DNA from: Oculina patagonica
Taxonomy: Eukaryota
NCBI RefSeq assembly: GCF_052425735.1
Contig: NC_135761.1
Span: forward strand, 8,556,001-8,620,000
Reading direction: 5' to 3'
DNA length: 64,000 nucleotides
In this document: positions 1,106-62,805 of the stretch, piece after piece
Position numbering within the stretch: the stretch's first letter is position 1
Layout of the letters: each line of letters starts with the position of its first letter
Program-made: the position numbers and the translations under genes
The notes under the pieces: model-generated
The model's input: only the letters and a program-made list of their open reading frames with translations
What the model was told of the DNA's origin: nothing
The model's database searches: none

Positions 1106-2077
1106 TCATAAAACTACGATCCAAAATTTAAGCTTTGACACTGATCTAAATGTCCGTTCCACAATGATGTCCTCATTGTGATTTTTTCTCAGTGCATTCT
1201 TTACAGCTCGTCGTATTTCTCCAATTCTCCAGCAGTACACAAGAGGATTTAAAAAGGAGTTAATGAAAACAACAGTTGTCACGTAGTCATATGCAATTTT
1301 CAATGTAATTGTGTACCCAGTAAACGTTTCCAGAAAAATCGTCACAAAAAGTGGAAAAAAGAAAACTAATAACAAACCATTAACATAAAGTACAGTTATA
1401 GAAGATTTTCTACATTTGAGCACGTTTATCGTGTTGCTTTGAACACTTTGTTGTTGCTGGGATATCTGGCGCTGATGTCTGCGAACGATCTGAAATATCT
1501 TCAAGGTGCTTATGGCTGTAACAAGAAATGTAAGCAGTAGTACTACCACAGGAACAAAAAGCCACCCACTCATCCAAAACCTCAGCAAAACGACTGCAAA
1601 TGAAACTACCCACACGACAAAAACAGAAACCGTTATTCTACGAACGGTAACAACCTCGTTGTAGCGCAGATGAAGTGTTAAAGCGAGAAGTCGATCGATG
1701 GAGATTCCGCTTAGTGTTGCCAAGGACACGCCAGTGGTAGTATAGCTAGATATGCTCTGAATAATTCTGAAGGCACAGTAAGCGTTCGCGTTACCCACTA
1801 GTTCCGCGATGTGAAAGGCGACAAAAAAAGGCTGACAAATCACTCCGACGACAAGATCCGAAGCTGCGAGGCAAAACAGAAGGATGAAAGATGGCGAATG
1901 AAGTTCTTGTTTTCTCCAGATGACATGTAAAATAACAACATTACCAGTAGATGTTAACAGAGAAAACACAGTATTAAGAATAGACGTTAGAACACTTGCG
2001 ATGAAGGTGTCTTTCGTTTGTTCCAAGTTAACGTTTAAGAAAAAGCAGTTGGGATTAATTATACTGCTTCCATTCAT
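1106..2077 (-). CDS. Class A 7TM GPCR, melanocortin/odorant-receptor-like orphan, 323 aa; the only inverted copy, with an extended C-tail
   Basis: Intronless ORF with 7 hydrophobic segments, LHSPSFILLFCLAASD (ICL1/TM2), SIDRLLAL (DRY variant) and NPLVY (NPxxY); paralogous to the other copies. Confidence 0.93.
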   Translation of the reverse strand: MNGSSIINPNCFFLNVNLEQTKDTFIASVLTSILNTVFSLLTSTGNVVILHVIWRKQELHSPSFILLFCLAASDLVVGVICQPFFVAFHIAELVGNANAYCAFRIIQSISSYTTTGVSLATLSGISIDRLLALTLHLRYNEVVTVRRITVSVFVVWVVSFAVVLLRFWMSGWLFVPVVVLLLTFLVTAISTLKIFQIVRRHQRQISQQQQSVQSNTINVLKCRKSSITVLYVNGLLLVFFFPLFVTIFLETFTGYTITLKIAYDYVTTVVFINSFLNPLVYCWRIGEIRRAVKNALRKNHNEDIIVERTFRSVSKLKFWIVVL

Positions 2078-3744
2078 GTCGAAGATGAATGTTACTGACT
2101 AGCTATCATCCTCAGCGTGTCCTTTAATTTCTGTTGCTGCAGCTGATGTTAGTCATATATTGTTAATATCTGCCATATTCGTGACCCCCAATTGATAACC
2201 GAGACAGACGGAGCTGTCGAACTTATTTACTTAACTTCGTAGAAAGAAATTATTGTGAAAGTCGACCTGTCATCCGCTATCTTAATGAGCACACTCGAAC
2301 TATGAACGAGATAGCTTTATATTTACTTTATTTTTAATGTTTTCAAAACTAACCTATTCACAGTCTTGCTTCGAAGCATCGAACCAAACAATTTTTTACA
2401 CCTTTATCCATCGTTTTAACAGGAGTTGAATGAACTGATTATATCGGCTTAAGATGGAAACTTTAATTACTTCCTTCAACATTTCAAGACAAGGAAGCTT
2501 TGAGACGAATATAAGGCGCTTGCTTATCTCTGTTGACAGGCATGCGCAGTAAATAAATACACATAGTAGGCTCAAAAGAAAAAAGAATGGTTAAATAAAC
2601 CATCCAGTTTTACCGAAAACAACGAATTTGAAAATAGAAAGTTGGTAAAATATAGCGGTTAAGCTGATTTTGGATGAGAATGACTTGCATGTAGGCCAAT
2701 TTTTAAGTTGGGTACTATGTAATTTTTTTATGTTTGTACAGGTCTTTTTACCTAGCGAAAACTTCAAATAAACAGACATAAAAAGAAAAAAAGAGCTTTA
2801 CCGACACATTTTTTTTATTTACACAACGTTACAATTGCCTTCGGAAGCAGAAAACGTTTGATTTTCTTTCGCATGGGTGAAAACTAACACAATATTTTAG
2901 CCAACGTTTTGTCTCTGTCATAATTTATTGGTGAGAATCCTTCACCTTTTGCAGACGAAATTATAAATGTCATTTGAACTTTGATCAAAATTTCAATAAA
3001 ACATTTGTTAGATAGAAAAAAAAAACAGTATTTTTAAAAAAAAATGTTGTATTGTAATGTTTTGCTAAGTTTAAAAAATGCTTCAAAAGATATAACCGGC
3101 TGGCTCCTTCTAAAAATTGCATTACGGTTTAGATCATTGCTTAGAATTATTGTTGTCTTAAATTGTAGCCATATTGTTTTTATTCACCCTTTGTTACACC
3201 AACGCACTTGGAAAACGCACTGATCATTCCAGGTGTTTTCATTAATCATTAATCCTTATCCCACACACATGAAAATGTAAAAAAAAATACTTATTTTAAA
3301 ATAAATTTCGCGTTATAAAGTAAAAGAGAAAATTAAAACAAAATCATAAAATCGGTAGCTTAATGGAATATGATCAATCATATGCAGAAAACGAATCCAG
3401 TTAAATATATTGTCAGTAATGAGGTAACAGTTTTTTTAATGTTTTCTTTTATGCAATGTAGGCGACGTATGTCATGTGTCTTGTTATCTTTCATTGGCCG
3501 TTTTCTCAGTCAAGAATAAACATATTTTGGAGGAGTCTTGGTAAAACGCTTCTTAGAAACTTAAAATTAGTTACGTAGAGAATTCTTTCTTGATAAGGTT
3601 TCATCTAACGAATTTCAATTGCTCGTGTAAAGCAACAATCTTTGGATTTTTTTTTGTCTTTTTCTTATAAACAGGGTTTTTTTTTTTTTAAAATTGCGCG
3701 CGAATTTAAGAATGAGGAATTTTAGAAAAATCTTTATTTTGAAA

Positions 3745-3783
<39 letters not shown>

Positions 3784-3804
3784 CCCCCCCCCCCCCCCCC
3801 CCCC
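3745..3804. repeat. Long A run followed by a long C run (low complexity)
   Basis: More than 30 A, then TT, then about 20 C. Exact run lengths may be unreliable in the assembly. Confidence 0.8.
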
Positions 3805-60498: not shown

Positions 60499-60872
60499 AG
60501 GGACACTGTCACCAGTTTCACTTCAAAAACTTAACAGCCTTAAGACATAATTATGGAAACTATAAATAGTGGTCCAATTTTGTTAAAATCACCACGCAAG
60601 TGTACTGAAGCGATAAACAAGTGATATTATTGTGATGCTATCAGGAACTTTAGATCTCAACTTGAAAAAGTCAGGCTTATTTTTCAAGTTTTGTGCTTGT
60701 GGAATGGAAAAACACCTTTAAATTAGTTTTGGCTCCCCCCTTCCTTCAACAACAGTTTACGTTATATCTTCATCTTGATGTACTAGGTGTATTTCATGGA
60801 CGAGAAGACCTATTCGCCAATTTTAGTACTTTTTTATCGAAAGTCATTAACCGATCCCCGTGAGGTGTCCCT
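60499..60872. mobile_element. Kolobok-like MITE
   Basis: TTAA|AGGGACAC...GTGTCCCT|TTAT; absent from the paralogous spacer at about 32340. Confidence 0.65.
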
Positions 60873-61905
60873 TTATATCTTCTGTTTTAGTTGTTTTTCT
60901 CTCTTTTTTTTATTCAAGTAACTGGTTTCTTTCCGTTTTGTATAGCCGGCACGTTTTGTCTTCAAGTTCCTTTTTTGAAGGGTATATTTTTCATAAAACT
61001 GAATTTAAACTAAAGAGCTAAATTTAATTTATTGCAGGTGTATCAGATCAGAGATCTGTAAGGTTTCCCATTTTCGCTACCCTGTAAGTATGGCGGGAAA
61101 CGGTCTCCGCATCCTTGGCGATGCTTCTTTTATTTTGGCGTGCCTTTCCAGTGTCCATTCTTTTGCACTTCTATTCCTGTTTTCATTTTTTTTTTTTGCA
61201 TTGTCCTTTTTTTGTTCCTTGGAACGAAGAGGTGGTATCGCCTTTTATCTCTCTTGTTATTTCTGTAAGTAAATAGTGGCTCTTTAAGAGAAATTTATTA
61301 AGACCTCGGCAGAGAAAACAACACGGCAATGTTAGGATGTTATCGGTCTTTCGACATCTTATTTGATTACTTTATATGAGGCGTTTTTAATTAAAGTTAC
61401 GTGAAAAGTCACTATTTGTCTTCCAGACCTTCAATATAAATGACAAGATTTCTTTGTCTAGTTGTCTCCTTTTTAAAATTTGTAATTACGTTTGGGCATA
61501 TGAAAATAAAATAAATTAACGCCTTTCATAAGTCTGTACTGTAGTCGAGCAAGAACGTCAGTTTTTTCGTTAATTTCGTTTTTTCGTAAATTTCCAGCTA
61601 TAATAGAATATAATTAATTTCAATGTTAAAACTAAGAGCGATGTGACTGGTCGCTTTATCGCTTATGACAACGGTTGCTGTTATTAATCCTACCGACAGA
61701 CTTTCTTAAGTGCCTCTGTGTTCTCTATACAAACAACTATGAAATTATATTAAAACAACAAAGAAAGTTCACCGTGCAGTCTTAGTGAATTATCACCAAA
61801 CCTAAGGTGACTCTAAACTGTAAAAGGTGCAAGTGTAAATCACATTGACGACATACATCAGGTACGGCACCCAAGGTAACAAACAAGTCTTTCATCTACG
61901 TGAAC

Positions 61906-62805
61906 ATGAACAGAACCAATGTAAGTCATATAAACTGCTTCTTTTTAAGCGTACATTTGGACCAAACAAAAGATACTTTCATCGCAAGTATTCTAACATG
62001 TATCCTGAATGCTGTGTTTTCTCTGTTAACCTCTACTGGGAATGTTATAATTCTTCATGTCATCTGGAAGAAACGAGAACTACACTCGCCATCTTTCACC
62101 CTTTTGTTTTGCCTCGCGGCTTCGGATCTCCTCGTTGGTGTGATTTCTCAACCATGTTTCGTGGTTTACCATATCGCCGAACTTGCAGAAAGCTTTAGTG
62201 TTTACTGCACATTCAGAATTACTCACACTATATCTAGCTATATAACTTGTGGTATGTCTCTGGTGACTTTAAGCGGAATCTCTGTCGATCGACTTCTCGC
62301 TTTAATCCTGCACCTCCGCTACAACACGATTGTCACTGTTGACAGAATCTTGATAACTGTTGCCTTCCTTTGGATCGTATGTATAACAGTCGTTATGTTG
62401 CGGTTCTGGATCAGCAAGTGGATTATTATCCCTGCCGTTATACTGCTTTCAACATTTCTTATCACAACCCTAAGCACCTTGAAAATATTTCAGATCGTTC
62501 GCAGACATCGGCGCCAGATAAGTCAGCAGCAACAGAGTTTTCAAATCAACACGGTAAACGTGCTCAAATGTAGAAAATCTGCAGTGACCGTACTTTATGT
62601 TTATGGTTTATTCTTGCTTTTTTATTTTCCAATTTTTTTGACGAGTCTTGCGACTTTATTCATTGGATACACATTAGAAGTGAAAATTGCCTATAACTAT
62701 GCTACAAGTGCTGTTTTGATCAACTCCTGCTTGAATCCACTTGTTTATTGCTGGAGAATTAAGGAGATAAGACGGGCTGTTACGAATTTACTGAGGAAAA
62801 CCTGA
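61906..62805 (+). CDS. Class A 7TM GPCR, 299 aa (divergent member)
   Basis: ATG at 61906 (MNRTNVSHINC); intact ORF with SVDRLLAL and NPLVY. Confidence 0.93.
   Translation: MNRTNVSHINCFFLSVHLDQTKDTFIASILTCILNAVFSLLTSTGNVIILHVIWKKRELHSPSFTLLFCLAASDLLVGVISQPCFVVYHIAELAESFSVYCTFRITHTISSYITCGMSLVTLSGISVDRLLALILHLRYNTIVTVDRILITVAFLWIVCITVVMLRFWISKWIIIPAVILLSTFLITTLSTLKIFQIVRRHRRQISQQQQSFQINTVNVLKCRKSAVTVLYVYGLFLLFYFPIFLTSLATLFIGYTLEVKIAYNYATSAVLINSCLNPLVYCWRIKEIRRAVTNLLRKT

Follow-up and report, generated by a model that had tools for sequence, protein, structure and literature searches.

Sequence analysis of a tandem array of orphan class-A G-protein-coupled receptor genes in the stony coral Oculina patagonica points to slow birth-and-death evolution

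Background

Rhodopsin-like G-protein-coupled receptors (GPCRs) were the commonest domain in the coral-amplified, mostly tandemly duplicated orthogroups recognized by Noel et al. (2023), accounting for 34 of 192 with function unknown (PMC10236652), and a set of odorant receptor (OR)-like genes, mostly single-exon and disposed in tandem arrays, was found in a sea anemone, Nematostella vectensis, by Churcher and Taylor (2011) through a motif in transmembrane helix 2 (TM2; PMC3017388). Both the tandem amplification of GPCRs in corals and the presence of OR-like single-exon arrays in Nematostella are thus already published. Outside the cnidarians, the sea-urchin "surreal" GPCRs and certain class-A subsets of lophotrochozoans were put forward as chemoreceptors on genomic grounds, with sensory-organ expression documented for some of them (as cited in PMC9897584; PMC11886862). 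Here we analyze a 64-kb stretch of a chromosome of the stony coral Oculina patagonica (hereafter the window), whose sequence is best explained as a tandem array of functional orphan class-A GPCR genes evolving by birth and death.

This array resembles the orthogroups of Noel et al. in representing a rhodopsin-like family amplified mainly by tandem duplication in scleractinians; however, theirs is a census at the level of orthogroups, whereas here one array is followed copy by copy through its pseudogenes, regional selection, mosaicism, synteny and a promoter-proximal motif. With the Nematostella OR-like genes it shares a cnidarian host, mostly single-exon genes, tandem arrangement and rhodopsin-like character, and on comparison of their TM2 motif (L..P.Y.L...L...D........P) with the equivalent consensus of the array (LHSPSF.LL..LA.SDL......QP) every fixed position is matched except for the replacement of Y by F; yet the array lies nearer to the alpha-group than to odorant receptors in both sequence and predicted fold. 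The sea-urchin and lophotrochozoan sets are likewise invertebrate, single-exon, clustered and lineage-expanded class-A GPCRs, but they are independent expansions in other phyla. Finally, the vertebrate arrays of ORs and trace amine-associated receptors (TAARs) offer a parallel in their compact single-exon coding regions, tandem clusters, many pseudogenes and overall purifying selection, and in combining a conserved cytoplasmic face with variable TM3, TM5 and TM6.

Results and discussion

Contents of the array

All 15 open reading frames (ORFs) of at least 200 amino acids (aa) listed for the window are paralogues of one another. From this listing and a tblastn search with one copy we recovered 13 intact single-ORF rhodopsin-class GPCR genes of 299-323 aa (about 900 bp each), 12 on the plus strand and one on the minus strand, every one of them a single uninterrupted coding ORF; the same search returned seven broken loci, bringing the total to 20 loci in 62 kb, 35% of which are pseudogenes. 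A preliminary description of this DNA had reported an array of ~900-bp single-ORF GPCR genes with 13 intact and at least six broken copies, and had emphasized its tandem, single-coding-exon organization with many pseudogenes; our count, with 7 of the 20 loci broken, bears out both statements and is far beyond what chance would produce. The loci, together with an insertion that splits one of them, are as follows.

1106..2077, minus strand: G01, intact GPCR of 323 aa, the sole minus-strand copy
6580..7479, plus strand: G02, intact GPCR of 299 aa
8020..8253, plus strand: gene fragment, TM2-TM3 only
11216..12139, plus strand: G03, intact GPCR of 307 aa, recent duplicate of G02 (synonymous divergence, dS, 0.32)
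14883..15782, plus strand: G04, intact GPCR of 299 aa counted from the ATG
16375..17252, plus strand: full-length pseudogene, interrupted in frame by a stop at codon 45, with the segment spanning DRL and intracellular loop 2 (ICL2) deleted and a frameshift near 17010
18298..18957, plus strand: pseudogene, C-terminal half (TM5 to helix 8, H8), interrupted
21707..22606, plus strand: G05, intact GPCR of 299 aa, mosaic
23628..24539, plus strand: G06, intact GPCR of 303 aa
25819..26035, plus strand: decayed gene fragment, weak
26498..27403, plus strand: G07, intact GPCR of 301 aa
28893..29804, plus strand: G08, intact GPCR of 303 aa, duplicate of G06 (dS 0.37)
33370..34269, plus strand: G09, intact GPCR of 299 aa, reference copy for searches and structure model
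37525..38223, plus strand: 5' part of a split gene (N-terminus to ICL3)
38224..43757, strand undefined: DNA-transposon-like insertion of 5.5 kb
43758..44003, plus strand: 3' part of the split gene (TM6-H8), continuing the reading frame of the 5' part when the insertion is left out
44309..44416, plus strand: short C-terminal gene fragment
46503..47401, plus strand: full-length pseudogene, frameshifted once near 47270 and with its tail shortened
48625..49545, plus strand: G10, intact GPCR of 306 aa
56161..57066, plus strand: G11, intact GPCR of 301 aa
58534..59439, plus strand: G12, intact GPCR of 301 aa, forming the youngest duplicate pair with G11 (dS 0.22)
61906..62805, plus strand: G13, intact GPCR of 299 aa, diverging most among the plus-strand copies

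On the 3' side of G07 (27404-27540) and G08 (29805-29950) an earlier C-terminal coding tail survives as remnants, with translations like IGEIRRAVK, and the C-terminus of G06 and G08 has been replaced by a slightly longer one (ending in NSLLYS and NSFVYS).

Family placement and predicted protein anatomy

In Pfam searches three scanned copies matched PF00001 (7tm_1) with 82-94 bits against a cut-off of 30.5 (E-values 2e-26 to 7e-24), and the odorant-receptor model PF13853 (7tm_4) gave 39-44 bits over TM1-TM4 only (profile positions 5-147 of 280). Among solved structures in the PDB the closest in sequence is MC1R (9k3p/7f4d; E=1e-15 over TM1-H8), followed by TAAR7f, 5-HT1F and CB2. An AlphaFold2 model of G09 built from 119 homologues (predicted local distance difference test score 92, predicted template-modelling score 0.89) displays seven helices and H8, at residues 22-55, 62-93, 97-142, 145-165, 174-208, 214-253, 257-284 and 286-298; its Foldseek neighbours are the adenosine A2A/A2B, TAAR7f/9/13, beta-1, 5-HT1 and D1 receptors at ~20% identity. 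No odorant receptor occurs among the 60 best PDB sequence matches or the 50 best Foldseek matches. Paralogues on the same contig of Oculina patagonica bear the NCBI names "histamine H2 receptor-like", "trace amine-associated receptor 7e-like" and "melanocyte-stimulating hormone receptor-like"; therefore, these genes are already annotated, under best-hit names. The wider family comprises 354 clusters at 50% identity (E at most 1e-30), and those Atlas clusters that lie nearest are for the most part cnidarian, with automatic names of the melanocortin or melanocyte-stimulating hormone (MSH) receptor-like kind, the phyletic range being taken from the Atlas taxon summaries and two named corals.

Vertebrate odorant receptors are marked by the signatures MAYDRYVAIC at TM3/ICL2 and KAFSTC in TM6 and by a long second extracellular loop (ECL2) with cysteines, while melanocortin receptors have acidic residues at positions 2.60, 3.25 and 3.29 (Ballesteros-Weinstein numbering), which serve the binding of calcium and of the peptide core, and a DPxxY motif in TM7. 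In the array N1.50, D2.50, R3.50, W4.50, P6.50 and NPxxY are invariant in 13 of 13 copies, with DRL in place of DRY and with NPLVY and FYVP(6.50) present. The sequence at the sites of the OR signature motifs includes SVDRLLALTLHLRY and matches neither MAYDRYVAIC nor KAFSTC, and the predicted ECL2 spans just eight residues (166-173) lacking cysteine. Positions 2.60, 3.25 and 3.29 are occupied respectively by F, by R or K, and by N, S, I or T, and position 3.32 by G in 10 copies and S in three, so that the amine counter-ion D3.32 is absent. The N-terminus is 21 residues long; it has an N-x-S/T sequon (residues 2-4), and cysteine is invariant at residue 11. The invariant cysteine at the top of TM3 lies at 3.22 rather than 3.25, and a Cys11-Cys3.22 disulfide bridge may be formed.

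Membership of the odorant-receptor family was rejected based on the partial 7tm_4 match, the missing signatures and the short, cysteine-free ECL2, and membership of the aminergic receptors and TAARs based on the loss of D3.32. Melanocortin receptors come closer, in that MC1R is the best PDB sequence match, TM2 starts with an LHSP motif and ECL2 is very short without a TM3-ECL2 disulfide; however, identity is only ~20-25%, DRL replaces DRY, and Foldseek places adenosine, TAAR and amine receptors first. In light of the missing acidic triad and the NPLVY standing where DPxxY would be expected, membership of this family was rejected as well. The label "OR-style" used in the preliminary description hence suits the genomic organization and fails for the protein family, the nearest relatives being the alpha-group MC1R, TAAR, adenosine and amine receptors; the array copies are best described as orphan class-A receptors of alpha-group-like type.

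Regional selection along the receptor

Selection was examined with our own implementation of the GY94 likelihood, which reproduces the IQ-TREE log-likelihood (lnL) of -6388.22. The ratio of non-synonymous to synonymous divergence (dN/dS or omega) over all copies is 0.316 under model M0, and pairwise values range from 0.16 to 0.33 at dS 0.22-0.99. The extracellular side evolves at omega 0.42 and the cytoplasmic side at 0.24 (likelihood-ratio test, LRT, 51; p=8e-13), which agrees with the preliminary description in its contrast of conserved intracellular parts with a more variable extracellular half; the intracellular motifs and the four TM3 variants that it quoted were all found in our alignment of the copies. 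The two sides have equal dS (0.70 vs 0.68) and dN is halved on the inner side, so that the cytoplasmic invariance reflects purifying selection; gene conversion homogenizing the cytoplasmic blocks was rejected, as dS is equal inside and outside them. The robust signal in the coding sequences is one of graded constraint, namely purifying selection that is partly released on the ligand side of TM3-6.

Duplication, recombination and orthologues

The duplication units measure ~1.5-5 kb, and those of the younger pairs extend beyond the ORF by 150-450 bp upstream and by 400-600 bp downstream, so that a short upstream segment travels with the gene. For instance, the 1.6-kb units of G11 and G12 (55920-57517 vs 58240-59872) are 85.6% identical, and those of G02 and G03 (6418-7938 vs 11056-12602) are 84.2% identical. 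Copies have also exchanged sequence: the tree of the 5' half is rejected by the 3' half of the genes (delta lnL 100, approximately unbiased test p=0.0005), and the clearest mosaic, G05, groups with G07/G11/G12 in its 5' half and with G02/G03/G09 in its 3' half. Copies have been lost through stops, frameshifts, deletions and the insertion of a transposon.

A syntenic array is present on two contigs of the ENA coral assembly ERZ25067872, where the orthologue of G01 (P0101) again points the opposite way to its neighbours. When homologues from other assemblies are included in a tree, the copies of the window interleave with foreign copies, the Oculina-only clades being G11/G12, G06/G08, G02/G03 and G07+G10+G11+G12+P0090. 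Orthologue pairs with ERZ25067872 display dS 0.43-0.50 and omega 0.17-0.23; hence, the youngest pairs of the window (dS 0.22-0.37) postdate the split from the other coral and the deepest (dS ~0.8-1.0) predate it. The main sub-lineages therefore predate the divergence from at least one other coral. Given these syntenic orthologues, with dS ~0.45 and omega ~0.2, turnover looks slow, and the history of the array is best described from these comparisons as slow birth-and-death. The repertoire had initially been regarded as lineage-specific; with several copies having orthologues in the syntenic array of another coral, it is not very much so.

The upstream segment

Of 16 full-length copies, 13 carry an E-box (CAGCTG, CAGGTG or CACCTG) 54-117 bp 5' of the ATG, often as CAGCTGCCACA, as compared to 6% of random 101-bp non-coding windows, although these counts are not independent, as the copies share descent. 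Examples are found at 56078, 58451, 26415 and 21637, and in several copies the E-box is followed by a TATA-like CATATAAGTT ~50 bp 5' of the ATG. The element is kept in three of five copies of the other coral (L001:9926, L001:6114 and L002:9916), with the surrounding CAGCTGCCACA conserved. We posit that it may represent a compact promoter copied along with each gene; any tie to neural basic helix-loop-helix factors is a matter of speculation. A splice acceptor directly 5' of the ATG was considered and rejected, as a conserved AG is absent.

What the receptors might recognize

Under the reading that we favour, all copies would signal through one common intracellular partner, the conserved half-pocket formed by TM1/2/7 would recognize one shared chemical feature, and the half-pocket of TM3-6 would set preferences that differ among the copies, which would together form a graded receptor set for one ligand class. 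A chemosensory role in the perception of waterborne or contact chemical cues seems slightly favoured over the binding of internal transmitters, at a little less than an even chance; the role is plausible and stays putative. The more specific picture of a true cnidarian chemoreceptor repertoire strikes us as doubtful: here each gene would be driven from a separate compact promoter bearing a proneural-type E-box, with sparse activation in larval or polyp sensory neurons, with TM1/2/7 anchoring one chemical class (e.g. a settlement, prey or conspecific cue) and TM3-6 tuning each copy.

Helix limits were taken from the AlphaFold2 model, with TM5 anchored at residue 183 via the Y5.58 of the wider family and the model helices. 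Across all helices the 39 generic pocket positions evolve at omega 0.41 and the 71 other outer-half positions at 0.35 (p=0.27; permutation p=0.30). When the helices are split, a division chosen post hoc with the data already seen, the TM3-6 pocket positions reach omega 0.63, as against 0.41 for the non-pocket outer-half positions of the same helices (p=0.013) and 0.19 for the TM1/2/7 pocket positions (p=3e-8). The varying pocket positions are 3.28, 3.29, 3.33, 3.36, 5.42, 5.46 and 6.52, and the exchanges alter both size and polarity (3.33 F/W/Y/S; 3.36 T/A/S/F/G/C; 6.52 F/S/L/W/C). The pocket-facing variation claimed in the preliminary description thus stands for TM3-TM6, pocket positions included, but not for the helices taken as a whole. 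The site models that it proposed as a check give marginal evidence of positive selection: M8 is preferred to M7 (LRT 12.1, p=0.002) and, over the whole gene, to M8a (LRT 3.6, p=0.03), with 7.8% of sites at omega 1.46, whereas no region of the gene reaches omega above 1, M1a assigns omega = 1 to 27% of sites, and the sites ranking highest are cytoplasmic. The picture resembles relaxed or tuned constraint rather than strong diversifying selection.

Several of these points weigh against the reading that we favour, beginning with the post hoc division itself. The pocket list consists of generic class-A contacts, and the Ballesteros-Weinstein numbers derive from motif anchors rather than coordinates. 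M2a does not improve on M1a (LRT 1.15, p=0.56), and when the gene halves are analyzed on their own trees the comparison of M8 with M8a yields p=0.06 and p=0.04. A FEL/FUBAR-like grid places only residue 65 (2.41, at the cytoplasmic end of TM2) and residue 214 (in ICL3) above a posterior of 0.9, position 3.33 being the sole site of the pocket list above 0.8 (posterior 0.83). Positive selection therefore appears at best weak, and it is confounded by recombination. Moreover, a search of sequencing runs with G09 listed no RNA run. One RNA library of the same organism yields only short contigs, 90-95% alike, on the coding parts; none of its contigs falls on the unique intergenic DNA that a DNA run covers evenly. 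This suggests that they are low-level transcripts of paralogues and not of the array genes. The conserved orthologues and the fixed half-pocket, finally, would also fit receptors for internal ligands.

This last possibility, that the genes encode receptors for neuropeptides, hormones or small transmitters that expanded together with their ligands, the tandem layout merely reflecting the mode of duplication, we regard as somewhat unlikely. It accords with the nearest solved relatives, which bind hormones or transmitters (MC1R, TAAR7f, 5-HT1, CB2 and adenosine receptors), with the retention of orthologues between species under constraint, with the invariance of half the pocket and with the want of robust positive selection; furthermore, peptidergic GPCR systems have expanded independently in cnidarians (PMC11087051). 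Yet the peptide receptors of Nematostella so far deorphanized had been picked by their kinship to bilaterian neuropeptide GPCRs (PMC11087051), pseudogenes make up 35% of the array loci, and both the amine counter-ion and the acidic melanocortin residues are missing. A set of largely redundant copies with the same ligand preference, in which the differences of the outer half would reflect relaxed constraint at mostly lipid-facing positions, is improbable in our estimate. The similar omega of pocket and non-pocket positions over all helices and the fraction of sites that M1a assigns to neutrality speak for it, as does a varying lipid-facing stripe of TM4 (4.43, 4.47, 4.51, 4.54 and 4.58) with hydrophobic exchanges; on the other hand, within TM3-6 the pocket is more variable than its neighbours, its exchanges at 3.33, 3.36 and 6.52 change size and polarity, and 13 intact copies have been kept at dS up to 0.99, with their orthologues under purifying selection. 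Noel et al. (2023) suggested for the amplified coral rhodopsin-like GPCRs a role in innate immunity or symbiosis (PMC10236652), whereby the array would detect microbial, symbiont or non-self cues. That suggestion was itself speculative, nothing in the window ties the array to immune genes, and the strong diversifying selection usual for immune receptors is wanting; we consider it likewise improbable here.

Mobile elements and other features of the window

The insertion that splits a receptor gene is bounded by terminal inverted repeats of 1.15 kb (97.6% identity), with TTAA flanking it at either end. Pfam gave no match for the one ORF in it that reaches 120 aa (40949-41323, minus strand), and a search of 39400-40100 against Rfam for a hammerhead ribozyme at 39701-39752 was empty both at the gathering threshold and at E of at most 1 with permissive filters. 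A further pair of inverted repeats (51258-52066 and 52903-53698; 810 bp, 96.9% identical) lies inside the 6.6-kb gap between G10 and G11 and is probably another non-autonomous DNA transposon. Outside the receptor genes, the only ORF of at least 120 aa with a Pfam match is a reverse-transcriptase fragment, at 55297-55743 in a G-rich stretch (GC 0.43, GC skew 0.12). An Rfam tRNA match at 21144-21216 on the plus strand (46.7 bits), ~500 bp 5' of G05, could represent either a decayed gene or a repeat of tRNA origin; ARAGORN reports no tRNA in the window. In ERZ25067872 the array is flanked by large mobile-element ORFs, including DNA_pol_B_2 (1325 aa), an rve integrase and a Pox_A32-like ATPase (L002:16327-20951 region of L003; L001:20278-20874), which suggests that a Polinton/Maverick-type element adjoins the array in the other coral.

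Conclusions

The array adds one case to a class of which corals and sea anemones had already supplied examples. It has long been asked how corals perceive settlement cues, prey, symbionts and neighbours, and we know of no cnidarian chemoreceptor GPCR with a known ligand. In this regard the array offers a compact test set of 13 paralogues that have the same cytoplasmic face, differ at few pocket residues of TM3-6 and possess orthologues in a second coral, while the short upstream segment with its conserved E-box could be used as a reporter.

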